Assembly (NCBI GenBank): GCA_964057225.1
Contig: OZ059896.1
Span: 11,532,001-11,596,000 of the forward strand
Source of the DNA: Auanema rhodensis
Taxonomy: Eukaryota; Animalia; Nematoda
Direction: 5' to 3'
Length of the DNA stretch: 64,000 nt
The notes under the pieces are model-generated. The model did not search any database. It was not told the DNA's origin and saw nothing but the letters and a program-made list of their open reading frames with translations. Shown one piece after another: positions 1 to 46,757 of this stretch; within the stretch, counting starts at the first letter, position 1, and each line of letters begins with the position of its first letter. Both the position numbers and the translations under genes were made by a program.

Positions 1-375
1 GGGAGTTTTTTCTTTTTTCGGTGTTACAGCCAAGTGTGTTGGCGTTTTTTCGTCGTCCGATGGACTTAAATCGTTGTCAAACGAGTCGTCACTATCGGGA
101 AAAGGAAATCGAGAAATACGATTTCTCTTGTCTCTTAATCTTTGAGAGGTACGGAAAGGCGTATCCGTATAATTATTCTTGGAGGTTGCCGTTTTGGAAA
201 AGGAGAAAAGTCAGAACAATCTACAATGTAAAATAGTGGAATAAGTTAGTAAACAAGATAAGAATATGAATAGTTAATAGTGAATAAATTAGTGAATAAC
301 ATGAAAAAAAAATCGAAGAAAAAAAAAGATATATAATAATATGGGTTGAAGATTAATTAATTAATGAATTCAGTT

Positions 376-1366
376 AATGGAACACATATCGAAGGTTAAT
401 TCGATAAGATCGTTAAAACAGGTGCACTGAACCACACAAGAACCACATGGCAAACGTTTTGTTCATAAAAATATGATAAATAGCTGTACACCACATGTAC
501 CAAGTTGTCTAATATTTTCAAATTACATGAAAGAATAGTTTAAAGAACCTTTTTTTTAATTTTATATTAATATATTCTAATATACTAACTCAATAAAACA
601 CATATCGAAGGTTAACTCGATAGGATTCACAAACAATTGTGTTGTTTCCAATGGAACACATATCGAAGATTAATTCGATAAGATCGTTAAAACAGGTGCA
701 CTGAACAACACAAGAACCACATGGCAAACGTTTTGTTCATAAAAATATGATAAATAGCTGTACACCACATGTACCAAGTTGTCTAATATTTTCAAATTAC
801 ATGAAAGAATAGTTTAAAAAACCTTTTTTTTAATTTTATATTAATATATTCTAATATACTAACTCAATAAAACACATATCGAAGGTTAATTCGATAGGAT
901 TCACAAACAATTGTGTTGTTTCCAATGGAACACATATCGAAGATTAATTCGATAAGATCGTTAAAACAGGTGCGCTGACCCACACATGTACCACATGGCA
1001 ATAGTTTTGTTCATAAAAATATGATAAATAGCTGTACAGCACAAGTATCCATAACGCTAAAGAATACTTACTATGCCAAGGGGTCATGGGTATATACTTT
1101 TTAGTATCAAAAATGTTAATGGAACACATATCGAATATCAATTCGATAAGATTGGTGAAACAGATACGTTGACCTACAATGAACCAAATGGCAAAGCACT
1201 TGTTCATTAAAGTATAACAAATAGCTGTATAGCATATGCATCAAGATTTCTAATATTCTCAAATTACGTGGAAAGAAGAGTATATAGAAAAAGTTTTAGT
1301 GTGTATATTACTAATATTCTAATACCCTAACTCAAAGAACACATATCGAAGATTAATTCGATAAGA
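376..1366 (+). repeat. Maverick subterminal repeat block: ~274-bp units carrying the palindromic motif AATGGAACACATATCGAA-N6-TTCGATAAG
   Basis: Motif copies start near 376, 592, 650, 866, 924, 1118 and 1333. The spacings 376->650->924 are each 274 bp. Confidence 0.9.
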
Positions 1367-2059
1367 TTGTTGAAACAGGTGCGCTGACCACAACAATACA
1401 TGCGTATTTATTAACAGCGGATTGGCAACTGCCACTGTTGACAGCTGTAATATGATACAATGTTGAGTGTTGGCAACATTGTTACGTGACAATAAAACAA
1501 CTGACTGTTCTTGCAATGAAGTGTAATATAAATGTGTAAAATGAAATATGGATAACTACCTCTCAGAGTTTGCATAATTTTATTCTAACAAGATACAATG
1601 GCTGCTAACAGGTTGTGTTTTTTCTTATCTTTTTTTAAATTAAAATATTTATTTTCAGTTATAAGCGTGTATGTGAAGAGTTGGGGTTCGATTATGAGGA
1701 AATTTATCAACTCAGGTAATTTAACCATATTTTTAAAATATACATCTTTGTTTTTTTTTAGTAAGCGCATAAAGCTTACCGAGAGTGGTGGTGCTGAGCT
1801 CTGTGACCCCGCAATAACCACTTCCAATAGTGGTCCCTCGTCATCAAGGGTTATTGAAGTTATCACCTTGGATGACAGCGATAATGAGTAAGCTATCGTA
1901 TAATGAAAAAGCATGAAATTTTTTTTTCAGAGAATGGAATCCCGAGATGCCATCAACTAGTGGAGAACAATTAGGAGGCGGTTCATCCTTCAACGATATT
2001 TGTCAAATAAAGGTACGAGCTTTTAACTTTTTTTTTTTCATGTTACAATTCTTTTCACT

Positions 2060-2798
2060 CTATATCTTTTATTTGATTACATATCTTGAACAATTTTGAA
2101 TTCTGCCATCTATTTTTAAACAAATCATCATACATTTGGAGGCTTTTTGAAAAATTAAATTAAATCTTACCCCAAATCCATGCCATAATATCATTTATTA
2201 AATTTTTAATCATTAAATTACACTTAAATTTAAATATTTTGATGCTCAAAAACTGACACATTTAAATATTTTGTATTTTCTAAACCATTTCACTCCATCT
2301 CTTTTATTTAATCCCATATTTTAAACAGTTTTATAAGTCTACTATTATTTAATTTTGATTTATTAAATTTTTAATCATTAAATTACACTTAAATTTAAAT
2401 ATTTTGATGCGCAAAAACAGAAACATTTAAATATTTTGTTTTTTCTAAACCATTTCACTCCATCTATTTTAAACAATTTTATATTTCTACCACTATTTCA
2501 TAATTTCATTTTTTAAATTTTTAATCATTAAAAAACATTTAAATTTCAATATTGTGATGCTCAAAAACCGAAACATTTGAATATTTTGTATTTTCTAAAC
2601 CATTTCACTCCATCTCTTTTATTTAATTCCATATTTTAAACAAATTTAAATTTCTTTCACTTTTTCATAATTTCGTTTATTAAATTTTTAATCATTAAAA
2701 AACATTTAAATTTCAATATTGTGATGCTCAAAAACTGAAACATTTAAATATTTTGTATTTTCTAAACCATTTCACTTCATCTCTTTTATTTATATATA
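2060..2798 (+). repeat. Diverged monomers of the 167-bp satellite inside polB intron 4 (intron 2013-4614)
   Basis: The TGATGC(T/G)CAAAAAC..AAACATTT core recurs near 2240, 2405, 2555 and 2722, with a fifth partial copy near 4419 beyond the Tc1 insertion. Confidence 0.9.
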
Positions 2799-4379
2799 CA
2801 GTACCGGCCAAAAAGATATAGCCTCCATTGTTTTCAGATATATCATGAAATTAAGGATTTTCAAAAATATTTTTTTAAAAGAGATAATAATAATTTAAAA
2901 GTGCTTGTCAAATAGCTGCTGGTTACTAAGAAATTTAAAATATTTAATAAACAAGAAGGACATATCTGTACTTTGTTACGTTTTTCATCTCAAATTTTTC
3001 AATGCTTCTCAAATATTTAGTGTTTTTTTTGCATAGTTTTTGTTTTAAAGAAGTTTCAATTCTCAATCTAGATCATGCCACGTACAAGAGGAGCCAAAAA
3101 TATTCCTGAAGATGTCCAAAAAAGCATAGTAAATGGGCGTACTATGGGTTTGACTCATCGTCAACTTTCGCAGCAGTTCAACATCAGCAGAAAAGCTGTG
3201 ACCAACATGTTAACAAGATGGAGGGTCAACCAAGGATTCGTTCACAAGAAAAGCACCGGAAGACCAAGAATCACTACTGAAATATGTGATAGGAACATTG
3301 TGCGTATCAGTCGCAATGATCCAAGGAAGACGGATACACAAGTTCTAGAAGAATTAGAAGGCTTGAACTCAGTAAAACCTTCGTTACGGACTATCAGAAG
3401 AAGGTTAGGACAAGCTGGATTGAATGGACGTAGGCCTGTAAAAAAACCACTAATCTCTGAGAAGAACAGAAGACTGAGAGTACAGTGGGCGAAAGAGCAT
3501 GTTCAATGGACAAGAGAACAATGGAATAAAGTTTTATTCTCAGATGAATTAAAGTTCTCGTTGATGGGATCCGATGGCATACATTGGATACGAAGGCCAA
3601 TCAATCGAAGATTTGATCCAAAATACCAGATACCCACAATCAAGCATGGTGGTGGCTCATGCATTGTGTGGGGCTGTTTTAGCTCTCAAGGAACAGGGCC
3701 TCTTCACCACATAAAGACGATTATGGACCGTCAAGTCTACAAGGATATTTTACAGAACGTCATGTTCCCATATGCAAAGGATGCAATTGGTTCAAGCTTC
3801 ATTTTTCAAGAAGATAACGATCCAAAACATCGGGCGCAGGAAGTTAGAATGTGGCAGCGTGAACAAAATATTGAGCGTTTGGATTGGCCTAGCCAAAGCC
3901 CAGACTTAAATCCCATTGAACACCTTTGGGAAGAGTTGGCACGTCGGCTAATAGGAAAAACAGCAAGAAACATCAATGAAAAATTTTCTCAATTGCAGGA
4001 GGAATGGGAGAAAATCCCTATAGATAAAATCAATACACTCCTTGACTCAATGAAAACAAGATGCCAGCGAGTAATAGAAGCGAGAGGGTACGCTACGAAG
4101 TATTAACTTTTGTTCAAGTTGTATAAAATAACTATATTTGTTTATTAATTTTTTCATCATTTTGTGAGAGTTGGTGCAGTAGTTGCATTTGAAGAAAACA
4201 AACGTGTTAATGAATAAAAGTCTAAAAAACATTTTTTTTCTTAGTTTACGAGAAAATTTATACCCGAACACTAAAAAGTTGTTATGTTTCGCATAATTAT
4301 GAAAAAGTAATGTCTAATAACAGCAAACACAAAAAAAATTCAAAAAATATCAAAATGCTATATCTTTTTGGCCGGTACT
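2799..4379 (+). mobile_element. Tc1-family DNA transposon inserted at a TA in the polB intron
   Basis: Left TIR CAGTACCGGCCAAAAAGATATAGC at 2799, preceded by TA. The inverted copy at 4357-4379 lacks the terminal G. The empty site is visible in copy B near 54405-54455. Confidence 0.95.
3075..4106 (+). CDS. Tc1 DD34E transposase, 343 aa, intact and intronless
   Basis: N-terminal HTH, GRPR linker, [13 protein letters not shown] and [12 protein letters not shown] count 34 residues between the second catalytic D and the E. Confidence 0.95.
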
Positions 4380-7300
4380 TAATTTTTATTTATTAAATTT
4401 TTAATCATTAAAAAAAATGATGCTCAAAAACTGAAACATTTAAATATTTTGTATTTTTCTAATCGTTTTGAAACAAACTAAACATATATTTGAAACCATT
4501 TCGGTTAAATAAAAAATAACGACTATAACAAACAAAGAGACATAATAATTATAAGCAAAAGATGAAACAATTCATATATATTTTTAAAACTGTTATAAAT
4601 GTTGTTTATTATAGTGGTCACACCGGCGCATAAAACGCACCGGTCGTTTTACCAACGTGGTCGTTCGATCGCTCACGTTCCCACACTTGGAAAATGTTGA
4701 TGAACCAATGCATGTTATCATGTTATTCAACAAATTCCTTGATCGTTGTCTTGCTGAAAGCGGTGTGCCTGATAAGCAAAAAGCCTTATTTTGTTTATCA
4801 ATTGAGCACCCTTCCTTTGAAAAGGGCTCCATATTTATGGACTTTCGTAGAAGGGAGCATCTGGATGGCGTAGCCATTATGAATGCCATCAGAAAGGTGC
4901 AGCAATCAAAACTGTAATCAGCCAGGCAATGAATATTGAGATGCATGTGTTTGATGAAAGGCCAGCGCAGCCAAGTCTGATGCCTGGTGAAGATAGAGTC
5001 GGGTTTTATTTTGACCCCGAACTCAAAATACCTGGAACCATTGCCAACACTGACTCACATTGTCTGGCTAGATCAGCAGTTGTGGGAATGTGGGAAGCTG
5101 ACGAGCTGGCCACTGAAGATGGCGATAAGAAGCGAAGGCTGCAAAACCTTCGTCGCAATTACATCTTATTGCCAAATCAGCCACACCATATCAATTTATT
5201 AACTAGGTGTGGCATTTCCGAAAATTTGCCAAATTATAATTTAATTCATTTAAACATTATTGCCAGCTGTAATACAAACTATAAGTTTGTAGTATATGCT
5301 AGACCGCCTGGACAGCGTATGTACACTATCCAGAAAATATTTAATGAAGCGGCTAGCAAATTGGTAACACTAGGTTACCGAAATAATCATTATGATTGTA
5401 TTACAGCTGGTAGTCGTTCAAAAATTTTTGACGGTATTATATGTCAACACTGTAAGTTATCTTACAACACAGTGTTGCATAGATGTAAAGCCAAATGTAA
5501 AAAATGCCCCACCTATAATTGTAATGCGATGGGGAATGTGGTTGAGAGTAGCGTGAGGTGTGATAGTTGTAGAGTTTTGTTTGAAACTCAACAATGCTTC
5601 GATAGGCATTTGCGAAAAGCCTGCCGAAAATTCAAGGTATTTTGTGAAAATTTAAAGTTGTACATAACAAGCTTAAATTCAGACATGTGTGGCGTGTGAT
5701 CACTATCACATGGTCCGTGCTGATAGACCGCACAATTGCAATGAAAAATTTTGCAAAAAGTGCGGTCAGACAAAGCCTGAAGAGCACTCTTGTTGTTGGG
5801 TTCCACCTAACGACAAGAAGAAGGCTCAGCTAAAAAAGAAGCACGAAAAGTTCAAGGTTTGTAGTTGTTATCTTTACAAATGTAATGCTTTCTTGTTTAA
5901 GCTCATATTTTATGACTTTGAAACAGTTGTGTTAAAAAACGGCACAAATGTTCATGAATATGCAGATGAACAATGGCCCAATATGGTTGTGTATAACAAA
6001 TTTTGTGAAAGTTGTATAGATGCCAATTCCTGTGAAAAATGCACAACCAAGGAGGGCCATTTTGGGTACCAACAAGGTGATAGTGAATGGTCTGTAACAG
6101 ATCGTTTCCTTGATTGGTTACTCAACTTTTCTGAGAATGATAATGCAATTTTGATTGCGCACAACGGGTCGCGCTTTGACATACATTTCTTGGTGTCTAG
6201 GCTGATAAACCGTGGAATATATCCTGACCCCATTTTAAATAGGACCAAGATTATTAGCATGGTTGTCAAGCCTTTAAGAGGTTAAAACATTAATCATTTA
6301 TGTTTTAAAGATAGTTATTTACTAGTGCCTTTACCCTTATCAGCGTTACCCAAGGCATTTGGTGTACCTGATATGAGTAAAGGACAATTTCCATACCTCT
6401 ATAATCACCCAATAAATTATGGCAAAGTGCTACCATCCTTGCCACCAAAGCATTACTATTGTACTGCTAGAATGAAAGCAGAAGACCTAGCTTCATTCAA
6501 TGCTTGGTATGAGGAGCGTAATCAAAGTGTGTTTGATTTTGATGAGGAGCTTCTGGAATATTGTAGGACAGTTGTCCGTATTTTAACCAACTGTATGAAA
6601 GTGTACATGAAGTTGGCCACCGCCACCACTGGAATCCTGTCATACAATGCATGACATTTGCAAGTTTTTCTTTATTCCAGGCAAGTTTTCAAAAATGCAA
6701 GCATTGTTTAAAGCAATTGTGTTTCAGTTGAAGATGAACCACATTAAAGAAAATCAAGTGGGTATTCTGCCTGAGACTGGTTATTATGCCGGCCAGAAGC
6801 AGAGTATAATTGCCATAAAATACATAAAATGGCTAGAACAAGGATTAGGCCGCCCATTAATGCATAAGCTTAATGGTGGTGAATTTGTTGTGAGAGTAGA
6901 TGGCCAACGCTATCTACTTGATGCTTATGACAGTGTGGCTAATCACGGCTATGAGGTGAGTAATTTGTAATAAATGTAAAAAATGAAAATTTTTGTAGTT
7001 TAATGGCTATATCTATCATGGTTGCCCCCAGTGCACCAACAAGACTGCTATTGCACCAGGCAGAAATGGTGAAACAATGGAAGAGGTAACCAATACTTTT
7101 TTTTAATCATTTTAAGCTGAAACATTTAGGTTTATGAAAAAACCATGAAAAGGTTTGAAGCTATTCAAAGCCAGGGCATTAGTGTAACTACTGTGTGGGA
7201 ACAGGAAATTACTGCTCAAATGTCATCAAATGAGCAAATGGCAAATTTTATGAAGGACACTGAGGTTGTAACTCGATTGGCACCTCGAGATGCCTTCACC

Positions 7301-8283
7301 GGCGGCCGAACTCAAACATATAAGCTTCTGGCCCAAGCTTCGGATAGATACTCACTAGAGTATGTGGACTTTTGTTCACTTTATCCATATGTAACAGCAT
7401 TTGATGCCTATTACCCTGTAGGTAATACCCACAAATTTGTTGTATCCTGTATTAGGAACACGCATAGGCGGTAAATTAATTTTTACAAACTGCCGCACAT
7501 GTGCAAACAGAGGCAAAAATGTAACATGCCCGCACCAAGATGATGAAGACGCTCGAAAGCTGCATCTGACTGTAACGCATGTAGAGCTCGAATGTGCCAT
7601 ACAGCGTGGCTACAAAGTGCTTCATGTTTATGAGGTTTGGCACTGGGATGAATGGCAGCAAGGAGGCTTATTCAAGGATTTTGTACAAAAGTACATAAAA
7701 ATTAAGCAAGAGGCATCGGGCTGGCCTAAGCTAAATATGACAGAGGCTGAAAAGGTATGTTTCATAAAAAGTATGGCATTAAATAACATTTTACAGCTAA
7801 ATTATCTCCAAGAGCACGAGAAGAACACTGGTGTTGCTCTGGAGAGCAACAAAATTGAAAAGAATGCGGCCATACGTAGCATTGCCAAACTACAGCTGAA
7901 TAGGTATGTAAACTTTTAAAAATAAAAATTTACAAATTTGCTTATAGTGTAAGGGGTAAAATGGGTCAAAGACCGGATAAAGCCCAAACCAAGATTATTG
8001 GTGTTGAGGATCCTGAAATTGGTAGGATCATAACTGATCCTGCAAGGGAGCTCACGGGCTTCAAAATTGTGGACGATGTGGCGTACTGTACAACAGTGCC
8101 AGAAGACTCACACTTGGCACCAGCGCCATTTACAAATGTAGCCATAGCGGCTTATACAACCGCTCATGCAAGGCTACTATTGTATAAGGCAATGGAAAAA
8201 ATTGGAAAGAACTTGGTGTATACAGGTAATTTTATACTTTGTATACAATTTAAACGTACATCATTTAGACACCGATTCTCTAA

Positions 8284-10043
8284 CGGTCACCGCTATTCGT
8301 TCATTCCTTGGAATGACAAATTATTTTCGGCGATTCATCAGAGACTACGCCAAAATAGCCGAACCGTTGTATCAACTCACACACAAGGATCAAGATTTCG
8401 AATGGACGGAAGAACGTGAAAAAGCATTCGAGACTCTCAAGAAAGCTCTATGCACAGCACCAGTTCTGAAGCCACCAACAAATGGAGCACCTTTTGTTAT
8501 TGAAAGTGACGCTAGTACTATTGCAATTGGAGCAGTCTTACTACAAGATACAGGAAATGGATTACACCCTGTTGCGTTCGCAAGTAGGAAGCTCTCACCT
8601 ACAGAAAGAAAATACCCACCTATCGAATTAGAAGCTTTGGCACTCGTCTACGCATTACAACAATTTCGCACATATGTTTTAGGCACGTCAACTAAGCTAA
8701 TAACGGATCATCGACCACTAACCAGTCTAATGAGTAGAAGAGATCTTATTGGAAGACTAGCGAAATATCAGTTAATGATCCAGGAATATGATATTGTGAT
8801 TATGTACCGTCCAGGACGTATGAATAGTGTATGTGATGCACTATCCAGATACATAGGCAACGAAGCTAACGATGGTCCTAAACCGAAGCTACAGAAGACA
8901 ACGCCAACAACAAGTTTAACGGATATCCAAGAAACCATCAACTATCTCATAAATGTAACCAATGTGGAAACTCTGGATACCGACAAACTAATTCAGTTAC
9001 AACAAGGAACACCATGGATTAAGGAAACTATTGCTGATATGTTAACGGAACAACCTAAAGTTGCATTATCAAGAAGATTCCATTGGACAAATATGATGGA
9101 AGATGCGAAAGAGATCGTCAGCCAATGCCTGATATGCGCAAAAAGGAAAATAAATCAACATGATACAACGAGAGAACCATATGGAAAGTTTGTTACCCCA
9201 CAAAAACCATTTGATAGGATTCATATGGATGTGACAGGACCTTTTTCCCCTAGCACTAATGGATTTAAATATATTCTTTCTATTCAAGATGCTTTTTCGA
9301 AATGGATAACGAGCATACCTTTACGCACACAGAATGCCGAAGAAACAGTCCGAAAGTTCCTGACGAATTTCGTCTTCATTTTTGGACCACCAGTGAGCAT
9401 CGTGTCTGACAATGGAGGAAATTTTAAATCTAAAGAATTCAAGTTAATGTGCAACGAATTTGGAATTGTACAAACCTTCTCTCTGCCATATCACAAAAAT
9501 ACAAACGGTCAAGTGGAACGACTACATCGAACCATCCAGGAATGTTTATCCACTTGTGCTGAAAACCGTGTCTCTCAATGGGCCTCACAATTACCTAAAA
9601 TCACATTCGCGTTAAATACAATCCCAAGTACAACTACCGGAATCAGCCCATACATTGCTTTATTTGGAAGAGACGCACGCCTACCTATGGACCGTCAATT
9701 ACCAGGACAACCTCATCTAAATTCTCCTGAAGATGACGAATTATTGGAAAGAAATGAGAACCGGAAAAATACCTGGGATTCTATTCAAGAAAAAATTCAA
9801 TTAAAATCAATTGAACAACAAAATCGGCTGAATAATAGTAACCGAATAGCATCACGTATATTTGAAATAGGTGAAATGGTACTATTGAAGGATATGACGG
9901 TTCACGGCAAATTGCGACCCACTTATAATGGACCGTTCAAAATTACAGGCGTATACAACTCATATGTGGAATTGGAAATGAGTCAAGGAAAGATGAGAAA
10001 AGTACATAAGGATCTCATCAAAAAGCTTGCTGCAACATTATGA
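8284..10043 (+). pseudogene. pol: Gypsy pol fragment: RNase H and integrase
   Basis: RNase H motifs ESDAST..IGAVL, ELEALA and TDHRPL. Integrase motifs HMDVTGP, SDNG, NGQVER and GPF. The 5' part is missing. Confidence 0.9.
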
Positions 10044-10100
10044 AAATTTTGGAAACCTTATGCATACCTGTGAGGACACAGGACTTCAAGAGCGGTAGCA

Positions 10101-10499
10101 TGTTATACTTTATAATTATGTACTTTATTCTTTCTATAATTTTTATGTATTTCTTTATTCTGTGTTTTATATTTTATATTTTATAATTCTAGTTTCTTGT
10201 CTTAGTGTATTATGTTATCAGTTATATTTTGCAGCTTCAGCATTTTCCGAGATAGTTATAATTGTCATTGACAACTTATAACCTTTCGTGGAAAATGCTG
10301 ATAACATTCGCTATATAAGCTTGCCATTCAACTGAATCTTCAGTTGGCGGACTTATCTTTATCTTTATTTGTTTATTGTTTAAATGTTTTTTATTTATAA
10401 TAAATCTTTCTCTCTTCCTCAAATCTTATTGTTTCTTTTACAACACATCAATCTAAGGGTCAATCATGGAATATTAATATCCAACTTAAGGATATTACA
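10101..10499 (+). repeat. Gypsy 3' LTR, 399 bp
   Basis: TGTTAT...ATTACA termini, a TATATAA near 10313 and AATAAA near 10399. Matches 14939-15337 in reverse, with different flanks beyond the CA end. Confidence 0.9.
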
Positions 10500-10552
10500 A
10501 TACCACCACTATCCTTCTGGTGTGATGTTTTTCAGCAAACTCTCGTAACATC

Positions 10553-10900
10553 TTAACCGGTAGCCAATTTTTGATATCGGCTCGAACCATCTTTGGTAAG
10601 GCGTTCGCTGGTATCATTTCCATCACCATCTTTACCATTCGTTCCATTACTATTATGAAGACGCCGAATATGACGCTGACAATTGAATCTTGTTCCAAAA
10701 GTTTCACTACAATAAGGGCACAAACGTCTACGAACACCATCCAAATGTCCATATTTTTGAATAAAGTCAGCATTGCTGATATAATTGTTACATACGGGTT
10801 GAATCCCGTCATGTCTTTTCAATACGTGATCACTAAAATGCTTGGCTGATGAAAATATTTCCTGGCACGTAACACAATACTTGTTACATAAAAGTTCCAT
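10553..10900 (-). CDS. Two-C2H2 zinc-finger protein (copy A), overlapped by a hydrophobic ORF at 10495-10812
   Basis: CVTC-x12-H-x4-H and CPYC-x12-H-x4-H. Homologue at 46758-47222. Confidence 0.65.
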   Translation of the reverse strand: MELLCNKYCVTCQEIFSSAKHFSDHVLKRHDGIQPVCNNYISNADFIQKYGHLDGVRRRLCPYCSETFGTRFNCQRHIRRLHNSNGTNGKDGDGNDTSERLTKDGSSRYQKLATG

Positions 10901-11158
10901 TAGAGGAAAATAAAAAACAACCACACACAGTCAACTCACTTTTATATAATGATTGGAATAATGACTAGTGTTGTACAAAAGCCTAGTCCCAGAGATATTC
11001 CTTTAATGAATGGCACTGAAATACGTTACAAAATCTTTTTGTACAGGGGTGTTGGCACAGATTGTTCCAACGTGTATCTTATACATAATTCACAGTGACA
11101 GGGAATATTCATAACTGACCACCTAATGTAGCAGGTGACGTTTTAATGGCAAAGTTGA

Positions 11159-11614
11159 TCATATGCTAGATAATTTATAGTCGAATACTTTATGCATAAA
11201 CGCTTTAATAAAGACATCATCGTTTTGTAATAGTTTAAAAAATGAACAGATGCTTTCAAATGTATTACCAGCTGACAACATTAGTATTACAAATATTGCA
11301 TAACTACCACAAGTGTATTCAATTATGCGTTGTGGTTTGCAAGTATTAACTTTTACATTTTTATATTTAGCCAAATAATGACGAATGTACTTGTTCATTT
11401 TATAACCCAAGCTACAGAAAAAGTAGGCTTGATCATTACGTACAAAGATGACTTGCTAATGTGTGCCCGGTTTATCGTGTGTGTCAGTATTTACAACAAG
11501 TGCAAAATTCTTTCGACGTGTTTTGGGTAGGGCCTCGGCGCTAAATACACCGAGGAATAGTTTTCGAGTGATGCGGACAGATCGCAAAAGTGACGCTATT
11601 TCAGACGAATACAT
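11159..11614 (-). pseudogene. Adenain-type cysteine protease with a premature stop
   Basis: Homologous to 47476-47931. The W of the catalytic HW motif is replaced by TAG near 11456. Confidence 0.85.
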
Positions 11615-11664
11615 TTAGTAAAATGATCTAGTGTAACTTTTGTATTGCGCACGTGCGGTTCAAT

Positions 11665-12117
11665 ATGCCACACCTCCTTCTAGACTTGAACTCAATTCAA
11701 TGGACAACACTTTTGAATCAAGAAATGGGTGGGGCGCCATTTAGTGGAATGATGTTTCAACGTGGTATGCAGAGAGGTCATGGCCTGGGTGGTATACTGG
11801 TAACTTTGGCATCGTTTTTACCACGCATTATTCAATCACCTATAGCCCAAAATCTCATCAATGCTGGAAGGAATGCATTATCCAGTGCTGTAAGCAATAG
11901 TCCAGTTGTAAATTCACCTCTTGGCGGCCAGTTGCTAAAAACTAGCAATGAAATTGTTGATGGGGTGCTCAAGGGCAATAATATCAAGCAAACTCTTGAA
12001 ACAGCCGGCCGGCAGGCTATACGAGATCTTACCGGTTTGGGCAAGCGGCGACGACGCAAAACCACAAAACCTCATAAGCGTCTGTGCATAACTCGTGAGC
12101 GGTCGTATCGTATTTAA
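11665..12117 (+). CDS. Maverick core/membrane-active precursor protein (copy A)
   Basis: QEMGG, QRGHGLGG, an amphipathic segment and a basic tail. Homologue at 47983-48435. Confidence 0.7.
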   Translation: MPHLLLDLNSIQWTTLLNQEMGGAPFSGMMFQRGMQRGHGLGGILVTLASFLPRIIQSPIAQNLINAGRNALSSAVSNSPVVNSPLGGQLLKTSNEIVDGVLKGNNIKQTLETAGRQAIRDLTGLGKRRRRKTTKPHKRLCITRERSYRI

Positions 12118-13517
12118 ATGGCTAAATTGATAGATTCAAAATCACCACAAGCACTTTTACCTAATATTAATTATAGTGACATACCGGCGTCGGCATTAGG
12201 TGTTGAATCCACTCGTACTGTACAAGTTCCTTCAAAAAATACTTTTCTTCCTCAAGGACCATGGGAATTTGTTATAGCACAAAATTCCAAATCATTTCTT
12301 AATCTGAGAAGGTGTTGGTTGAATGTAAAATTCAAAATTGTAACCACAAACGGCGATCCAGTACCAGACAACCTTGTTTTTGCACCATGCCAACAATTTG
12401 CAGCCAGTTTGATACACTCGTATCATTTAAAAATTGGTGATGTTAGCGTGTATGACTCTACCGTAAATCATGCCTACAAAACATATATTGAGAATATTCT
12501 AATGTATAGCAACGATGTTAAAGAGAGCAAACTTGCCATAGCAGGCTATTATGCGGATAGATATATAGATAATGCAGCCAGTCCTGGATTTAGAGCGCGA
12601 AAGCTTGTTAAAAAAAAAAAAAAAAAAAAAGGGCTTGTTAAAAATGGCATATTGTGTGAGATGGCTGCTCCCATCAGTATCGACTTATTCAATCAGGAAC
12701 GACTGTTTGTAAACTATTCAAAAATGGAGCTAACTGCATATCCAAACCGTGATAATTTCTTAATTGACACACTTGGATGGAATAATGAAAGCAAAGATGC
12801 TGCAATGAAGGAGGAGTTTCCAAACCTGAAAATAGATATCAACGATGTACACTTGCTTATTCAAGAGTTTGATCTAAACGCTGGATTAGCTATGGCTATA
12901 GAAGATAAACTTGTGAAGGAACGAAAACACTACCCCATGACGTCAGTGAAAATGCGATCTTATTTCATAGAAGGAGGCCGTTTGGATTCACCCAATAACA
13001 TATTATTCACGTCGCATACACCGAAACGTGAGTAGAGAGCCATGCCGAATTTACTAACCACGCCCCCAAACAGTTGCTAAAAACATACTTTTGAGGGCGT
13101 CAGCTGCTAAAAACATACTTTTGGGGTCGTCAGCTGTCAAAATCATATTTTCGGCGTCAGCTGTCAAAAATACACTTTTCCTCCCGAGGCAGGCTCTCGA
13201 GCGTGCGCATGGATCAAAATGCATGATTTTTTTTAATCTTTTTTAAAATTATTTTTTAATGTATTTTTAAATGAATTTTTAGAGTTCAGTCACCAGCAAT
13301 GTATAAAACCGGCTTCACATTTTTTGTATTTGATATTTCACCGACTGTACACTCGTCCGAGTTATTTGATGTTATACGACAAGGTAATGTGGCCCTGAAA
13401 TTGGAATTTGGCCAACAAACGCCGCAAGAGGGTTTATATGCTATTGTTTATGCAGAATATGACTCTATTCTTTCAATTGACAACAATCGTGCTCCATATA
13501 TTGATACCAGTTTGTAA
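12118..13517 (+). pseudogene. Major capsid protein, interrupted
   Basis: Homologous to 48436-49770. Carries a 30-nt insertion at ~12603-12632, and ~230 nt are replaced by a Maverick terminal fragment at 13031-~13288. Confidence 0.9.
13031..13288 (+). mobile_element. Isolated Maverick terminus (TIR fragment) nested in the MCP gene
   Basis: Begins exactly AGTAGAGAGCCATGCCGAATTT, as at 33109 and 36897. Confidence 0.88.
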
Positions 13518-13651
13518 TGTATGTAATAAACTCTTTAAAACATTTGATGAGAAGAATAAAATTTATTAATACAACTATACATAAAAATCTATAAAACCAA
13601 ATACAAATATACACGCAATAATAAAATTTATAAATTCAAATATATTGAAAA

Positions 13652-14938
13652 TTATTCACAATAACCATAGGGTAAAGTACTAAAATCGTCTAGATAACAA
13701 AGTTCATTCATTACGACCTTGGTACTCTTTGTCATGTCCATCGTGGATATGGAACCAAGCTGTCTCTTTAATAACGTTGTTTTGGTTTTTAAAACCAATT
13801 TTTCTCCATCCATCACGAGTCCTCGAACCAATCGCTCCATACTTTGATAGTTTACCACGGTGGCTGCCGTGTGGTCCAGCGTCTGTAATTTTAAAAAGTT
13901 TCTCAATAATATATTTTTATACTTACCACTCCCTTTGCCTTGGTGATATACTTGACCTGACCAGCTGCATTTACTAGCTCATAACTATAAACTTTTGCAG
14001 CTGGTGAAACAAATTTGGTCATTGACCAACCATCGGGTATTTCTGAGGTTAGTTTACCTAACCATTCACACTTCATATCCTCAATTGGATCAGGCTGATC
14101 GAGGCATTTTAAATAAATTAGAGAATCGGTGTCTAAATGATGTACGTTTAAATTGTATACAAAGTATAAAATTACCTGTATACACCAAGTTCTTTCCAAT
14201 TTTTTCCATTGCCTTATACAATAGTAGCCTTGCATGAGCGGTTGTATAAGCCGCTATGGCTACATTTGTAAATGGCGCTGGTGCCAAGTGTGAGTCTTCT
14301 GGCACTGTTGTACAGTACGCCACATCGTCCACAATTTTGAAGCCCGTGAGCTCCCTTGCAGGATCAGTTATGATCCTACCAATTTCAGGATCCTCAACAC
14401 CAATAATCTTGGTTTGGGCTTTATCCGGTCTTTGACCCATTTTACCCCTTACACTATAAGCAAATTTGTAAATTTTTATTTTTAAAAGTTTACATACCTA
14501 TTCAGCTGTAGTTTGGCAATGCTACGTATGGCCGCATTCTTTTCAATTTTGTTGCTCTCCAGAGCAACACCAGTGTTCTTCTCGTGCTCTTGGAGATAAT
14601 TTAGCTGTAAAATGTTATTTAATGCCATACTTTTTATGAAACATACCTTTTCAGCCTCTGTCATATTTAGCTTAGGCCAGCCCGATGCCTCTTGCTTAAT
14701 TTTTATGTACTTTTGTACAAAATCCTTGAATAAGCCTCCTTGCTGCCATTCATCCCAGTGCCAAACCTCATAAACATGAAGCACTTTGTAGCCACGCTGT
14801 ATGGCACATTCGAGCTCTACATGCGTTACAGTCAGATGCAGCTTTCGAGCGTCTTCATCATCTTGGTGCGGGCATGTTACATTTTTGCCTCTGTTTGCAC
14901 ATGTGCGGCAGTTTGTAAAAATTAATTTACCGCCTATG
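13652..14938 (-). pseudogene. polB: pPolB 3' portion (motifs B and C and the C-terminus), cut by a Gypsy insertion
   Basis: 14118-14938 is essentially the reverse complement of 7463-8283. Contains YTDTDS, SPAAKVYSY, KAKG and the terminal TLPYGY. Confidence 0.9.
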
Positions 14939-15337
14939 TGTAATATCCTTAAGTTGGATATTAATATTCCATGATTGACCCTTAGATTGATGTGTTGTAA
15001 AAGAAACAATAAGATTTGAGGAAGAGAGAAAGATTTATTATAAATAAAAAACATTTAAACAATAAACAAATAAAGATAAAGATAAGTCCGCCAACTGAAG
15101 ATTCAGTTGAATGGCAAGCTTATATAGCGAATGTTATCAGCATTTTCCACGAAAGGTTATAAGTTGTCAATGACAATTATAACTATCTCGGAAAATGCTG
15201 AAGCTGCAAAATATAACTGATAACATAATACACTAAGACAAGAAACTAGAATTATAAAATATAAAATATAAAACACAGAATAAAGAAATACATAAAAATT
15301 ATAGAAAGAATAAAGTACATAATTATAAAGTATAACA
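14939..15337 (-). repeat. Gypsy 3' LTR, 399 bp
   Basis: Reverse complement of 10101-10499. Abuts polB sequence at CATAG. Confidence 0.9.
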
Positions 15338-15394
15338 TGCTACCGCTCTTGAAGTCCTGTGTCCTCACAGGTATGCATAAGGTTTCCAAAATTT

Positions 15395-17895
15395 TCATAA
15401 TGTTGCAGCAAGCTTTTTGATGAGATCCTTATGTACTTTTCTCATCTTTCCTTGACTCATTTCCAATTCCACATATGAGTTGTATACGCCTGTAATTTTG
15501 AACGGTCCATTATAAGTGGGTCGCAATTTGCCGTGAACCGTCATATCCTTCAATAGTACCATTTCACCTATTTCAAATATACGTGATGCTATTCGGTTAC
15601 TATTATTCAGCCGATTTTGTTGTTCAATTGATTTTAATTGAATTTTTTCTTGAATAGAATCCCAGGTATTTTTCCGGTTCTCATTTCTTTCCAATAATTC
15701 GTCATCTTCAGGAGAATTTAGATGAGGTTGTCCTGGTAATTGACGGTCCATAGGTAGGCGTGCGTCTCTTCCAAATAAAGCAATGTATGGGCTGATTCCG
15801 GTAGTTGTACTTGGGATTGTATTTAACGCGAATGTGATTTTAGGTAATTGTGAGGCCCATTGAGAGACACGGTTTTCAGCACAAGTGGATAAACATTCCT
15901 GGATGGTTCGATGTAGTCGTTCCACTTGACCGTTTGTATTTTTGTGATATGGCAGAGAGAAGGTTTGTACAATTCCAAATTCGTTGCACATTAACTTGAA
16001 TTCTTTAGATATAAAATTTCCTCCATTGTCAGACACGATGCTCACTGGTGGTCCAAAAATGAAGACGAAATTCGTCAGGAACTTTCGGACTGTTTCTTCG
16101 GCATTCTGTGTGCGTAAAGGTATGCTCGTTATCCATTTCGAAAAAGCATCTTGAATAGAAAGAATATATTTAAATCCATTAGTGCTAGGGGAAAAAGGTC
16201 CTGTCACATCCATATGAATCCTATCAAATGGTTTTTGTGGGGTAACAAACTTTCCATATGGTTCTCTCGTTGTATCATGTTGATTTATTTTCCTTTTTGC
16301 GCATGAGGCATTGGCTGACGATCTCTTTCGCATCTTCCATCATATTTGTCCAATGGAATCTTCTTGATAATGCTGCATGTGTTCTTTTGATTCCTTGATG
16401 CGCTCCAATTCTTGCGTCTTCATGAAAAAGTTTCGCAAGTACTTGATTCAATGTCTTTTGTTTTGGAATCATAATCCTTGGAGAAAGATATTGTTTGTTA
16501 GGTCGAGCATGCAAAACTCCGTCGATAACAATATATCTATCGCTATTAATCTGTTTAGGTTGTTCCGTTAACATATCAGCAATAGTTTCCTTAATCCATG
16601 GTGTTCCTTGTTGTAACTGAATTAGTTTGTCGGTATCCAGAGTTTCCACATTGGTTACATTTATGAGATAGTTGATGGTTTCTTGGATATCCGTTAAACT
16701 TGTTGTTGGCGTTGTCTTCTGTAGCTTCGGTTTAGGACCATCGTTAGCTTCGTTGCCTATGTATCTGGATAGTGCATCACATACACTATTCATACGTCCT
16801 GGACGGTACATAATCACAATATCATATTCCTGGATCATTAACTGATATTTCGCTAGTCTTCCAATAAGATCTCTTCTACTCATTAGACTGGTTAGTGGTC
16901 GATGATCCGTTATTAGCTTAGTTGACGTGCCTAAAACATATGTGCGAAATTGTTGTAATGCGTAGACGAGTGCCAAAGCTTCTAATTCGATAGGTGGGTA
17001 TTTTCTTTCTGTAGGTGAGAGCTTCCTACTTGCGAACGCAACAGGGTGTAATCCATTTCCTGTATCTTGTAGTAAGACTGCTCCAATTGCAATAGTACTA
17101 GCGTCACTTTCAATAACAAAAGGTGCTCCATTTGTTGGTGGCTTCAGAACTGGTGCTGTGCATAGAGCTTTCTTGAGAGTCTCGAATGCTTTTTCACGTT
17201 CTTCCGTCCATTCGAAATCTTGATCCTTGTGTGTGAGTTGATACAACGGTTCGGCTATTTTGGCGTAGTCTCTGATGAATCGCCGAAAATAATTTGTCAT
17301 TCCAAGGAATGAACGAATAGCGGTGACCGTTTTGGGAGTTGGAAATTTCTTAACGGCTGTAATTTTTGATGGATCAGGTTGTATTCCATCACGACCAATT
17401 ATAAATCCAAGAAATTTAACTTGTGTAGCTGCAAATTTGCATTTACTTAGTTTTGCTTTCATTCCTAATCCTTGTAAAGCTTGTAACACTTCTTCTATAT
17501 CCTCCAGATGTTGTTCAGCTGTGTTTGATATAATGAGTAGATCATCCAGATAAACAAAAAGTCGACATTTTACTTGATTTTGCAAATAGCGAACAGCTGA
17601 TTGAAATGTATGTGGAGCTCCACAGAGACCCATCGGCATTCTGCAATATTGATAAACTCTTGATGAGGTCACAAATGCAGTGAGGTGACGGTCTTCTTCA
17701 CGTAAAGGAATTTGAAAAAATCCCGATACGAGATCGATGTTTGTGAAGTATCGAGCTCCTGCAGTGCTGTCGATTATTTCTGGTATATGCGGAATAGAAT
17801 AAGTCTGTTTCTGTGTGACACTATTGAGTGCACGGAAGTCCGTTACAAAGCGGAATGAGTTGTCTTTCTTCTTGACTAAGACGACTGGACTTGTA
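15395..17895 (-). pseudogene. pol: Gypsy RT-RNase H-integrase, frameshifted
   Basis: The frame SPVVLVKKKD...YLDD...RNase H...HHCC...DDE is broken by a 2-nt loss near 16305 (intact in the + copy) and by a deletion/frameshift near 17895. Confidence 0.92.
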
Positions 17896-20800
17896 AAACT
17901 TGGGCAGGTCCATATCGGTTCTCAAAGTGATTGAATGTTCTATTGGTCCTTTGAATAATCCAATGTTCCGATCTTCGTTAAAAAAAGCATTTTTGAATCT
18001 TCTCAACATAGTTTTGAGATTTTGACGTTGATTTTTAGATAGATCCGTTGATTCGAATTTTAAGTTATCGAAAGGATTCTTCTCAAAAATAGGCAATTTA
18101 TCTGACCAATCAGCTTCTGGTGGAATATGGTCCGGTATATGTGGGATTCCAATTTCTTCTGCTATTTTTCCTTTTCCAATAATGGTGTTTCCTGTTAACT
18201 TCACCTCATAATTTGCTGTATTGATGGCGAATATTGTGAGTGGTGAAGTCTTGATAGCAGTAGGTGTGAATTGAATAGGTCCATTTCCACATCGTATAAG
18301 AGCGTATTGTTTTGGTTGTAGTTCTTTTGCCAATTGTAGACGAATCATAGCTTTAGTTCGGGGTGGAATAATAGATTCTCTAATGTTTATAATTGAAACG
18401 GTGTCTGAACTGATGCGAAAGCTCTTCTGGTTAGCGGATAATAATGGTAGAAAATGGTTTCCAACTATTAATTGCTTGCGTAGAGCTTGTAGAGAAGTTG
18501 TTATTCCTTTTTCTTCTAATGCTTTCATGATGTCCAAACCAAGTAACATTTCAGTAGGACAATGTTTATCCTCAGAGATTAAAAATGTGTGTGAAAGATG
18601 GTATCCAGCAATAACAATGTCCAACGTTATTGTACCCAGAAAGTTGAATATTGATCCATTTGCTGCGGTGGCAGAGATTTTAGTTGAGTTGAAATTCTCT
18701 TTTCCTAAATAGCGTACTGATGATTCCTTCAAATATGAAACAGATGCTCCGCTATCCCATAAAGCTACGAGTCCTCTGCCTTCTGCTTCGATTCTTATAT
18801 ATGGGAGTTCTCTTTTGTTTGTTGCACAGCATCCAACAAAAGGTATAATAATAGGAATAAAAGTGATGACAGTAGGAAAATATCTTCGAATAGTTTCGTC
18901 GTCGGCTGGAACATCGATGTCAGCGTTGAGTAGTTCGTGTTGTTCAACTGCATTCACATTTAAGATAGGAACTTTCTCTTTGATATAAGATACAACAATA
19001 ATGTATAATGCTGATCCAAAGATTAATATAACTATCATAACACCTGCAGAGATAAACATTCTGTTGAGGGATCCAGCAAAGAAATCAACTCCTCGTTCCC
19101 ATAGTGATGATGCAATATTTTGAGTAGAACTAAAAAGTTCGTTACTTTTTGTAAACCATTCTGATAAGCCTGGCAAATTCGCTTGATTCGTGATAACTCG
19201 TAGAAAATTTCTATGAGGATTGGTAGCGAAAATGTGTCCATATGTTAAGCTTATTGTTCTAACTAAGTTTTCATCGGTGATATTTTCATAAAGATTTCTT
19301 TGTGAAAATCGAATGGCTGCTAGATCGGGATACTGATCTGAACCAATGTTTAAAGCAGTTACGTTTGTAACTCCGTTGAGGGATTTCCATTCTCCATCCT
19401 CTTTCCATATATCATTTTCTACTGTTTCACATGGAATTTCAGTTCCATATGCTTCCAAATCTGCTGAATCTTGAGGTGCAAAGTAGAGGCGGTCATCATC
19501 CGTGATGACGGGTGTTTCTAAATAACACTTATCTTTGTATGTGTGGTTGCGATAAATGTGAATTGGTTCTATTGGCTGACAGGTTGAAACCCGAATAAGA
19601 TTCCGTCCAATTATTCGAGCCACTACATCATCTCGTTGCATAATAGATCGGATAGCAATCGTAGGATTGATATTAAATATAGCTTGCCATGTCTTAATAA
19701 GTTCAAGTTGAGCATGACATATGCTGTGATGTTGATGATGAAATTCTTCGACCAGTATGGTTCTCATTCGTTCAAATCCATAGTTGAGTTTGTTGATGGT
19801 AGTTAATGCATCTCGATGTCGAAGTATAGTATTCTGGTGATCAGTTAAGTGAGTGCCGAATAATTCTTGAGCTTTCTCTATGCTTCCAATCATGGGTTGC
19901 ATTGATGTCATCCCTTGAATAGTACTAATTGTTTGTTTTGTAGTAGATGATGTATTTACAACAGGTTTTGAGGTAGCACTAAGAAATCGTGCAGTTGGCG
20001 TAGTTTTAGTGGTGATAGAGCGACTGAATACTCTTTTTGTAATCTCTTCAGGTGCTGGTTTTGAAAACCATGACATTAAATCAGTTAATTGTTTAGCGTC
20101 AATATTGATGTTACGGCTGTAGAGATCTTCTTTATTCGAAGGCATCGGTATTCCAAAATTGGTTTCTCGGTTTCTGAGTGTCCAGTTATCCAACAGCTTT
20201 AATTTCATTTCATATACTTGATCTTTCACTTGTCGTTGCATAAAATGATTATGAAAGAACAGTTTCATTCGATAATATTCTATCAGTTGAGGTTGAGAAT
20301 ACTGATAGCGTAGTTCACGAAGTAATTCTTTTGCTTTATATACCACAGAACGTGGATCTCCAAATGTGAAGTTGAGATGGTTTTGATATACTGTGAATAT
20401 CAAAAATTCGAGTGGTGGCACATATTCTGTTTCGGATAAGATTGCAGGTATTTGTATCAATTCCCATAATTTATCTCTTGCAACCGAAATTGTAGAATTG
20501 CCTGGTTTAACTATTCTTTTTATATAATTGATAGGAAGTCGGTGTGCTAGTTGACCGACGACAAAACTAGGCTCCATTTGTTCGATCCACATTTTTGTAA
20601 TCATCTTGCTTTCTTCTCCTCCTAGAGCATGTAGTAAGAGAATATTCGGATCGCGGAAGTCTTTTAAATTTGCCCAGTAATCTATAGTATGATCAGTAAT
20701 GTTCAAAATATGGACAGCTGACAGCAAAAATTGATGATATCGAGCAATAACAGTCAGGTTCTGATATTCGTTGCTAACTGATTGATAGTGATACCAGTTA

Positions 20801-21190
20801 TGAATATATCGTATGGTATTTCCGCCAAACGTGACAGTATATCTAGCAAACGGTAGATCCAATATTTGAATAGGAGTTAACTTATATTCCATTTCTGAGC
20901 GAAATGACGCAATTAAGGATGAATTTGTTGAACGTTTATAGCGTTGGCGTGAAGGATCCATTTGATAATCCAAATAACTTGTTAGATCCAGTAGAGAATA
21001 TGCATGCGGATAATCAATAAACGAGACAAGAGTCTCAGTAGTGGATTCAAAAATTGGTGAAGAAAAACAAGATTGAGTTGTAGTAGATGCTGAGGTGTTG
21101 GCTAAGACAAGTGCTGTTTCTAGACTTGATATTAGCAGTGTTTGATCTCCAAGTATTCCATACAGAGGTCCAATACGTGTGTATTGGCGT
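17896..21190 (-). CDS. Env-like (gB/class III fusogen-like) glycoprotein fused in frame to the aspartic protease and RT start; 5'-truncated
   Basis: The frame stays open from ~21190. Furin site RYKR (~20935); ICHAQ..NPT..IR....RDDVVARIIG..VSTC..CYLETPV..IPC (~19720-19430); transmembrane segment (~19060-18985); LWDSGASVS (~18755). Confidence 0.8.
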
Positions 21191-21890
21191 TTTGTTCATT
21201 AAAATATGATAAATAGCTGTACACCACATGTACCAAGTTGTCTAATATTTTCAAATTACATGAAAGAATAGTTTAAAGAACCTTTTTTTTTAAATTTTAT
21301 ATTAGTATATTCTAATATACTAACTCAATAAAACACATATCGAAGGTTAATTCGATAGGATTCACAAACAATTGTGTTGTTTCCAATGGAACACATATCG
21401 AAGATTAATTCGATAAGATCGTTAAAACAGGTGCGCTGACCCACACATGTACCACATGGCAAAAGTTTTGTTCATTAAAATATGATAAATAGCTGTACAG
21501 CACAAGTACCCATAACGCTAAAAAGAATACTTACCATGCCAAGGGGTCATGGGTATATACGAATATTTTCAAACTTTTTAGTATCAAAAATGTTATTGGA
21601 ACACATATCGAATATTAATTCGATAAGATTGGTGAAACAGATACGTTGACCTACAATGAACCAAATGGCAAAGCACTTGTTCATTGAAGTATAACAATTA
21701 GCTGTATAGCATATGCATCAAGATTTCTAATATTCTCAAATTACGTGGAAAGAAGAGTATATAGAAAAAGTTTTAGTGTGTATATTACTAATATTCTAAT
21801 ACACTAACTCAATGGAACACATATCGAAGATTAATTCGATAAGATCGATAAGAAGAAACAGGTGCGCTGACCACAACAATTCATGCGTAT
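21188..21890 (+). repeat. Maverick subterminal repeat block joined directly to the satellite
   Basis: Matches ~728-1408 and 33956-34655. Confidence 0.9.
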
Positions 21891-33108: not shown

Positions 33109-34655
33109 AGTAGAGAGCCATGCCGAATTTACTAACCACGACCAACAGTTGCTAAAAACATACTTTTGAGGGCGTCAGCTGCTAAAAGCATACTTTTTGG
33201 GGCGTCAGCTGTCAAAATCATATTTTCGGCGTCAGCTGTCAAAAATATACTTTTCCTCCCGAGGCAGGCTCTCGAGCCTGCGCATGGATCAAAATGCATG
33301 ATTTTTTTCAAATCATTTTTAAAATTATTTTTTTAATGTTTTTTTAAGGAATTTTTATTATTTATATATTTGTTAATTGTATTTGTAGATATTTTTTAAA
33401 ATTATTTCTTTTTAAATGTATTTTTAATATTTTTATATGTTTTAAATATTATTATTTAATTATTTCTTTTTAAATGTATTTTAATATTTATATATTTTTT
33501 GATTGTTTTTATAATATTTATACATTTGAATAAACTTTTTAATATATATTATTTTTTTTATATTAGTTTTAATTTATAAAATTTGAATATATATGAAAGC
33601 TAATTAATATGTTCACCGTACCTCTTATGGGTTAATCAATGGAACTCATATCGAAGGTTAATTCGATAAGATATATTTTATATATTTATTTTTTAATTTT
33701 ATTTGTTTACATTGTTTATAGTTTGTGCTTATTATAGTTTATAATTATTTATTTAACTTCTAAAAAGTTTGTTGTTTTTCTAGGCGAACCATTTTGTTCA
33801 CCGTACCTGATATGGGTAAATCAATGGAACACATATCGAAAGTTAATTCGATAAGAACGATATGAAATACAAAAGTTAATGAAACACATATCGAAGGTTA
33901 ATTCGATAAGATCGTTAAAACAGGTGCACTGACCCACACAAGAACCACATGGCAAACGTTTTGTTCATTAAAATATGATAAATAGCTGTACACCACATGT
34001 ACCAAGTTGTCTAATATTTTCAAATTACATGAAAGAATAGTTTAAAGAAATTGTTTTAAATTTTATATTAGTATATTCTAATATACTAACTCAATAAAAC
34101 ACATATCGAAGGTTAATTCGATAGGATTCACAAACAATTGTGTTGTTTCCAATGGAATACATATCGAAGATTAATTCGATAAGATCGTTAAAACAGGTGC
34201 GCTGACCCACACATGTACCACATGGCAAAAGTTTTGTTCATTAAAATATGATAAATAGCTGTACAGCACAAGTACCCATAACGCTAAAAAGAATACTTAC
34301 CATGCCAAGGGGTCATGGGTATATACGAATATTTTCAAACTTTTTAGTATCAAAAATGTTATTGGAACACATATCGAATATTAATTCGATAAGATTGGTG
34401 AAACAGATACGTTGACCTACAATGAACCAAATGGCAAAGCACTTGTTCATTAAAGTATAACAATTAGCTGTATAGCATATGCATCAAGATTTCTAATATT
34501 CTCAAATTACGTGGAAAGAAGAGTATATAGAAAAAGTTTTAGTGTGTATATTACTAATATTCTAATACACTAACTCAATGGAACACATATCGAAGATTAA
34601 TTCGATAAGATCGATAAGAAGAAACAGGTGCGCTGACCACAACAATTCATGCGTA
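33109..34655 (+). mobile_element. Maverick end (polB-side TIR plus subterminal repeats), non-autonomous derivative
   Basis: AGTAGAGAG start, GGCGTCAGCTG repeats, an AT-rich spacer and the palindromic motif array. Confidence 0.88.
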
Positions 34656-42810: not shown

Positions 42811-43109
42811 CTACAACAAGCACAAATAGTACAATTGGCGTTTTATTCTTGTTTTGTTATGTGGCATTTTTATATTCTCAGCCGTAACATTTTTTTTTTT
42901 CCAGCTCTTGCGAATATCCATCAATGGCTCATCAATTGAGGACGAATGATCAACCAACTGGTAAGAATTTGAAAATTTGAATAGTCTACATTTTTTTTTT
43001 GCAGGTTGAATTGTTGTTGTTTGTATTTTGCTGGTTTTTTATTGTTACATTATTCGATATATCAAATAAATCATTTATTATAATTACAATTGTTTATAAC
43101 ATTGAAAAA

Positions 43110-45155: not shown

Positions 45156-45167
45156 TGAACAAGCACT

Positions 45168-46752: not shown

Positions 46753-46757
46753 ACGTT

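Follow-up and report, generated by a model that had tools for sequence, protein, structure and literature searches.

In plants, tandem repeats in the 3' untranslated part of long terminal repeat (LTR) retrotransposons constitute a hypervariable internal region that seeds new satellites. The seeding of satellites by tandem repeats inside transposable elements is established, the closest case being Tetris/TIR-220 of Drosophila virilis, in which a short tandem block in a DNA transposon is also found as kilobase satellite-like arrays that are argued to start inside rearranged element copies, in a heterochromatic setting (PMC4079207). A report on bivalves describes tandem-repeat MITEs (miniature transposable elements with inverted repeats), e.g. 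DTC84 of Donax trunculus, as small, high-copy, non-autonomous elements whose satellite-like core of ~150-170 bp also occurs as arrays and is spread by transposition (PMC3879986). Here we describe a stretch of 64,000 nt of the nematode Auanema rhodensis (GenBank assembly GCA_964057225.1, contig OZ059896.1, positions 11,532,001 to 11,596,000 of the forward strand), referred to as the window, in which a 167-bp satellite is found both as arrays and as a short tandem block inside a predicted intron of the family B DNA polymerase gene (polB) of a Maverick/Polinton transposon. This satellite is probably a new example of the known route of satellite origin.

The locus resembles Tetris in the co-occurrence of block and arrays and differs from it in the position of the repeats, which in Tetris lie in the terminal inverted repeats (TIRs) of a non-autonomous foldback element, whereas here they lie in a predicted polB intron of a large Maverick. 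The arrays described here are, in addition, tied to the Maverick arm, its terminal and subterminal sequence, by a single deletion-type junction. Tetris is documented by genome-wide, fluorescence in situ hybridization (FISH) and two-species evidence (PMC4079207), in contrast to the present case, in which all sequence evidence is drawn from one 64-kb locus with natural units as references. Unlike in the bivalve MITEs, the repeats show no sign of spread by transposition, and their copies within the window represent segmental duplicates. The plant LTR retrotransposon satellites belong to another element class and host kingdom and involve neither an intron nor a deletion junction. With the nematode Mavericks/Polintons described previously the elements share a protein-primed PolB, a retroviral-type integrase, predicted nematode-style introns and mosaic exchange between lineages and, probably, an adenovirus-type protease and terminal repeats (10.1101/2022.07.12.499685; 10.1101/2023.08.22.554363). 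The polB 5' end faces the arm here, whereas the polB 3' end faces the TIR in one C. bovis element, and a term search of the same two reports finds tandem repeats or satellites unmentioned for their elements (10.1101/2022.07.12.499685; 10.1101/2023.08.22.554363). A literature search returned no link between Mavericks/Polintons and satellites and no fitting 167-bp nematode satellite.

The 167-bp satellite occupies ~20 kb of the window in two large and four short arrays, all on the + strand:

21889-33103, + strand: array 1, 11.2 kb, its first ~1.1 kb with an irregular 431-bp pattern (Tandem Repeats Finder)
34655-35206, + strand: short array of ~3.3 units, with a second copy at 38443-38994
36546-36890 and 40335-40596, + strand: short arrays (Tandem Repeats Finder)
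55519-64000, + strand: array 2, 8.5 kb, a lower bound as the array continues past the end of the window

The large arrays contain 72 (array 1) and 51 (array 2) units as detected by nhmmer with one natural monomer as query, and mean pairwise unit distances within them are 0.049 and 0.058, respectively. Spacing is exactly 167 bp in 82 of 114 intervals. The repeat therefore has the form of a satellite, long head-to-tail arrays of a homogeneous unit, and the lengths measured, 11.2 kb and more than 8.5 kb, agree with the arrays of 8-11 kb or more reported by a first-pass annotation made from the sequence alone. The likeness of 167 bp to the length of a chromatosome, noted in that annotation, is for this locus purely numerical.

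Near the left end of the window, within the Maverick designated copy A, the repeat also forms a short block:

372-8283, + strand: Maverick copy A, comprising an arm, a segment found in A only (1410-2012), the intron span 2013-4614 and a protein-primed polB
372-1409, + strand: copy A arm (terminal and subterminal), with a 31-nt core motif at ~274-bp spacing (Tandem Repeats Finder)
1598-8283, + strand: predicted copy A polB, broken, with pieces of Pfam DNA_pol_B_2 and homologue matches from ~4627
1598-1611, 1659-1715, 1762-1887 and 1931-2012, + strand: predicted exons 1-4, followed by exon 5 from 4615
2013-4614, + strand: predicted intron 4, with GT at 2013 and AG at 4613-4614
2053-2797, + strand: partial unit m0, a spacer of ~68 nt and units m1-m4 (nhmmer and local alignment)
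4381-4468, + strand: the rest of m4 and partial unit m5 (4418-4468), 44/44 identical to an array unit

Four units, at 2204, 2369, 2519 and 2685 (m1-m4), and a partial fifth are arranged in the + orientation, so that the ~five diverged monomers previously placed in the predicted polB intron 4 are recovered by nhmmer and local alignment. A partial upstream unit that had not been described, m0 (2053-2115), is identical at 52/62 positions and scores 64 against a shuffled maximum of 45. The block is found again, inverted, at 54320-55041 in a second Maverick, copy B, and at 35347-36068 and 39135-39856, the latter two being additions to the first-pass list; these three inverted copies are 98.5-99.3% alike. 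The repeat of the arrays is thus also a short block of ~five units inside a transposable element, in four copies of the predicted intron, and alignment places arrays and block in a single repeat family. Similarity to the arrays climbs along the block, from 84% for m0 to ~89-90% for m1/m2, 90-94% for m3, 95% for m4 and 44/44 for m5; the corresponding distances of the copy A units m1 to m4 are 0.112, 0.101, 0.096 and 0.050. Higher-order repeats in the arrays, with a dimeric m3-m4 or other period, were looked for and none was clear.

Assignment of the block to an intron depends on a gene model. The predicted exons 1-4 are open in phase with GT/AG borders and add up to 279 nt (phase 0). The frame of exon 5, open from 4615, is the one matched by polB homologues, and full-length polB relatives have 100-200 residues before the matched domain, leaving room for such exons. 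The window, an AT-rich repeat patchwork, has short introns of the GT...TTTCAG type, which together with the rhabditid best relatives of its Tc1-like transposase point indirectly to a nematode-like, rhabditid-like genome. The closest polB homologue begins about where exon 5 begins, and Pfam searches with the exon-3, exon-4 and exon-5 peptides and the polB N-terminal domain matched no family, so that homology does not assign the upstream exons to polB. The span 2013-4614 is consistent with a polB intron as a model read from the sequence, rather than as a demonstrated fact. Correspondingly, the earlier proposal that a promoter and exons 1-4 were lost in a deletion is upheld in so far as the splice model is frame-consistent and is weakened by the lack of a homologue for these exons. 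Both polB copies look dead. In copy A the gene has ~2-3 frame changes without an intron-sized gap, a transposon nested in the intron and a missing 3' part, lost at the boundary with a retroelement piece; in copy B it has ~1-2 frame changes and is without exons 1-4 and the polB-side arm. These frame-change counts are approximate, as introns and frameshifts are not separable with certainty.

Each array starts against Maverick arm sequence, the arm segments concerned being:

21188-21888, + strand: arm fragment before array 1, 94.2% identical to A 729-1414
33791-34654, + strand: Maverick arm from terminus to junction (composite unit U1), with a second copy at 37579-38442
36263-36890, + strand: arm fragment (equivalent to A 1129-1409) with a two-unit short array, with a second copy at 40051-40596
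55236-55518, + strand: arm fragment before array 2 (equivalent to A 1129-1409)

Alignment with copy A reveals one identical junction at 6/6 array starts and in the orientation of copy A, which confirms the shared junction that had been placed at ~1408. Homology to the A arm ends at ~1409, where a unit begins in its first phase; the joint carries AT-rich microhomology of 4-5 nt. The array-flanking arm shows 94.0% identity to A, and over the 334 nt that open the array, 263/281 positions (93.6%) match A units m3-m4. Among array dimers compared with A m3-m4, this opening one is on a par with the best of the bulk array (maximum 93.7%) and stands above the mean for the bulk array, 91.9%. Such equal divergence of arm and units is the outcome expected if one deletion occurred in an A-related element.

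The region surrounding the short arrays is itself duplicated:

33104-40596: two composite units, each consisting of element X, arm, short array, inverted intron, arm fragment and short array
33104-33790, + strand: element X, which has 30-bp repeats and a tail rich in AT; a second copy at 36891-37578 and a diverged copy at 40597-41228
35185-36246, - strand: inverted copy of nearly the whole of intron 4, including units m0-m5, with 98.5-99.3% identity to 54158-55219; a second copy at 38973-40034

A composite unit of 3788 bp is tandemly duplicated at 32758-40591 with 99.8% identity, and part of it recurs at 54158-55856 with 98.5-99.3% identity. Structures of this kind raise the question of whether the junctions and duplicated units were created by mis-assembly of a satellite-rich region, as both the 99.8% tandem duplicate of 3.8 kb and a 100% inverted, permuted duplicate (7463-10502 and 14118-17331) are of a type that assemblers produce. 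We regard this as highly improbable. The junction is present six times with flanks that differ by 0.2-3%, the intronic block occurs in copies ~5% different and the satellite units vary by ~5%; assembly error is unlikely for the junction because its copies differ by natural amounts.

We hold with roughly even confidence that the arrays grew from the Maverick intronic block after seeding by a deletion. The 167-bp repeat would have arisen as a small tandem duplication in a Maverick, within the modelled long 5' polB intron, and the block would have persisted there as ~five units. In an A-related element, one microhomology-mediated internal deletion running from the inner end of the arm to the third (or fourth) unit may then have removed the putative promoter and exons 1-4, landing the younger units directly against the arm. 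The dead derivative would have expanded these units to kilobase arrays by unequal exchange or replication slippage. The later patchwork would reflect exchange between copies and deletions alongside segmental duplications (3.8-kb units at 99.8%), with Tc1, an LTR retroelement and element X as insertions.

The structure of the block bears on the direction of this transfer. The block starts at unit phase ~64-84 and ends at ~84-86, amounting to ~5.0 units, and arrays end at other unit phases (1, ~40 and ~96). A whole number of units favours in-situ tandem duplication, as would be expected of a block that originated where it lies; given the fuzziness of the 5' edge, a fragment taken from a long array would keep a whole unit number only ~6-25% of the time. 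This is one difficulty for the opposite direction, in which the satellite is an older component of the host and a Maverick ancestor took a few units into its 5' intron, since a random fragment of a long array seldom starts and stops at the same unit phase. The junction would on that account have formed later, by non-homologous joining or by a deletion between a Maverick and an adjoining array. Composition is a second difficulty: neither the variant states common to m1 and m2 nor a degenerate partial unit such as m0 is seen among 116 array units, and the intronic block holds more kinds of unit than the 19 kb of arrays. The junction orientation and the equal divergence on its two sides also fit an internal deletion rather than capture. 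Conversely, the chromodomain of the copy B integrase could bring Mavericks into satellite heterochromatin, the window is repeat-rich with many rearrangement junctions, the right ends of the arrays lack continuity with a Maverick and m4/m5 are as near to array units as those are to each other (0.050; 44/44), which conversion from the arrays could equally produce. The first-pass annotation had allowed for such a capture, and with reason, the unit tree having no root and conversion being able to mimic the m4/m5 likeness; we consider it unlikely, at the level of a minority account that merits weighing.

A neighbour-joining (NJ) tree places the arrays with m3 and m4 against m1 and m2 in 60-69/100 bootstraps, a grouping that may, but need not, reflect the nesting of array monomers within one or two intronic monomers predicted by the first-pass annotation. 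Several observations nevertheless weigh against growth of the arrays from the intron. The tree is unrooted, its bootstrap support is moderate and parts of the unit conflict: over its first two-thirds the array unit is nearest to m3/m4, over its last third it is nearest to m2 and distant from m3 (0.17-0.21), and no single pair of intronic units explains an array unit. To judge from these different nearest units, exchange between copies has blurred the genealogy. Between copies A and B, units m1 to m4 are 8.5%, 0%, 9.5% and 0.9% different, respectively, and such patchy differences point to exchange between repeat copies. At sites where A and B differ, the common array state is that of A at 17, of B at 8 and of neither at 3, too even to give a direction of conversion, and a window-by-window comparison of A, B and the arrays finds patchy differences without clean tracts. 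The agreement of phase at the two block ends is fuzzy on the 5' side by up to ~20 nt. Homologue searches with 1409-2013, part of the segment supposedly deleted, gave no match at E<=1.

The remaining adverse points concern the junction and its surroundings. The six array flanks are 97-99.8% identical to each other, and the six junctions are for this reason one event copied by segmental duplication; the case is therefore built on a single junction event at a single locus. At their right ends the arrays do not continue into the intron tail or polB; they stop at element X, in other unit phases, or at the inverted intron copy, and from the third unit on the array edge no longer has the layout of the intron. 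Continuity of the arrays with the element is thus present on the left, at the arm junction, and absent on the right. Within the composite units, the tail of the inverted intron meets + strand units ~35-50 nt from the acceptor, and the joints between inverted intron and arm fragment (55219/55236, 36246/36263 and 40034/40051) are cut inside the core motif and lie within ~10 nt of the predicted exon-4 donor, features for which a simple deletion may not account. Nor does copy B prove that the block predates the split between Maverick subfamilies, because copy B is a recombinant: identity between A and B is 97-99% through the intron and ~350 bp beyond, then 75-94% across most of polB, the step from 0.97-0.99 to 0.81 falling inside the polB coding region (4379-8283 versus 54409-50375), and the B 5' module is one of the three copies that are 98.5-99.3% alike. 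By this profile copy B has an A-like 5' part, acquired by recombination between Maverick lineages. The statement that the block occurs in both subfamilies consequently holds as to its presence in B and fails as to independence. Similarly, for the claims that the junction originated by deletion and that the satellite was born in a Maverick intron and seeded by a deleted copy, the block, the form and orientation of the junction and the equal two-sided divergence stand in support, and the single event and the missing right-side continuity count against.

The arm sequences permit a further account, which is best considered with the features of copy B:

41229-55219, - strand: Maverick copy B (Pfam, A/B homology)
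41229-41416: copy B far arm (core motif)
43113-44228, - strand: chromo-integrase, with Pfam rve 1.2e-08 and Chromo 3.4e-08 at the integrase end
45171-45848, - strand: P-loop protein, with weak P-loop matches only
47479-48018, - strand: adenain-like protease, Peptidase_C5 at E 0.0014, below the curated cut-off
~50109-54125, - strand: polB, broken, DNA_pol_B_2 9.2e-23 and 2.6e-16
54126-55219, - strand: copy of intron 4

The 31-nt core motif is found at 30 sites in the window, all on the + strand (e.g. 379, 21388, 33826, 41264 and 55444), with those in the copy A arm at 379, 653, 869, 927, 1121 and 1336. Its spacing is ~274 bp in A-type arms versus 55 bp in the B far arm, and a search with the motif detected no arm of opposite orientation in the window. 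The motif is shared by the polB-side end of A and the far end of B, oriented as a TIR requires. Position ~1409 could accordingly be the inner edge of a TIR of ~1 kb, with the array-side arms representing the far arms of B-oriented elements. Such elements would naturally bear 167-bp units inside the arm, where the arrays would have grown without any deletion of promoter and exons; the composite units would be internally deleted minus-strand elements, and the origin of the satellite would still lie inside the element. All 30 core motifs being on the + strand, the array-side arms are oriented like the B far arm, element X or X' lies outside every array-side arm as it does outside the B far arm, and the composite units consist of arm and units followed by a B-oriented intron, an arrangement for which one deletion suffices and no inversion is needed. 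TIRs of 100-1500 bp are, moreover, usual in these elements (10.1101/2023.08.22.554363). Against this, if mildly, the B far arm ceases to match A just past the last core motif, ~40 nt short of 1409, and contains no 167-bp units, B being of another type. The first array dimer is collinear with A m3-m4 at the same identity as the arm, and the window has no two-armed element from which the TIR length of the A type could be read. We rate this far-arm origin as rather improbable and continue to prefer deletion in an A-related element as the source of the junction.

Satellites often seem sourceless, and few cases retain the first junction along with the seed block; here the early steps would be directly readable. 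If the element-to-array direction is confirmed, Mavericks/Polintons would join the transposon classes that found satellites, and a dead, internally deleted copy could be such a founder. It is doubtful, and in our estimation has only a small chance of being correct, that the intron-born repeat of a Maverick became a major chromatin-scale satellite of its nematode host. Were it so, the satellite might serve as a mark of heterochromatin, of centromere-like domains or of eliminated DNA, and arm sequences would mark the birthplace of every array. The locus also bears on the construction of repeat-rich regions in nematodes, which here proceeded by segmental duplication of composite units (arm, array and element X), and on recombinant mosaicism between Maverick lineages.

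Identification of the elements as Mavericks/Polintons is based on a protein-primed family B DNA polymerase in copies A (in pieces) and B and on the rve integrase of copy B, the corresponding part of copy A being missing. The N-terminal polB domain has 81 relatives, several of 1260-1430 aa. In copy B, the open reading frames (ORFs) 45895-46749 and 48436-49767, considered with regard to jelly-roll capsid proteins, have no Pfam match, and the weak P-loop and Peptidase_C5 matches leave a packaging ATPase and an adenovirus-type protease as candidates. An element with both ends, or with a readable target site duplication (TSD), was not found in the window. The chromodomain of the B integrase could direct integration into methylated heterochromatin, which would account for the joint occurrence of Mavericks and satellites.

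The remaining features of the window are as follows:

1-372: unique flank, with no second copy within the window
2799-4380, + strand: Tc1-like DNA transposon nested in unit m4, in copy A only, with an intact transposase of 343 aa (3075-4106)
8283-21188: rearranged stretch containing a piece of the LTR retroelement, an opposite-orientation Maverick segment (10598-14938) and the retroelement itself (- strand)

The inverted, cyclically permuted copy at 7463-10502 and 14118-17331 (99.7-100% identity) comprises a piece of polB and the 3' part of the retroelement, and stems either from inverted duplication in the very recent past or from a fold-back in the assembly; because of it, copy A is not one collinear element. 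The LTR-type retroelement occupies ~14935-21100 on the - strand and has a 1050-aa ORF that combines a match to class-III viral fusion glycoproteins (Monjiviricetes_fusion, 2.9e-12; the match to the herpes gB ectodomain is weaker) with an aspartyl protease, followed downstream by reverse transcriptase (RT), RNase H and integrase. A search for an LTR pair around ~14935-21100 found none.

In each of three unrelated left contexts, the start of element X falls on the same base. The element always lies just outside a Maverick terminus, and its first ~255 bp are also present at 13031-13291. In copy A, element X lies inside a Maverick ORF, replacing 223 bp that are kept open in copy B. An inverted-repeat search in element X returned AT-rich chance pairs only, and the element may be a mobile element, an outer part of the arm or a shared flank.

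The Tc1-like transposon has no counterpart in B or in the intron copies of the composite units. Its transposase matches Pfam HTH_Tnp_Tc3_2 (1e-20) and DDE_3 (4.9e-12), and its closest database relatives are ~60% identical, mostly proteins of Caenorhabditis and other rhabditids.

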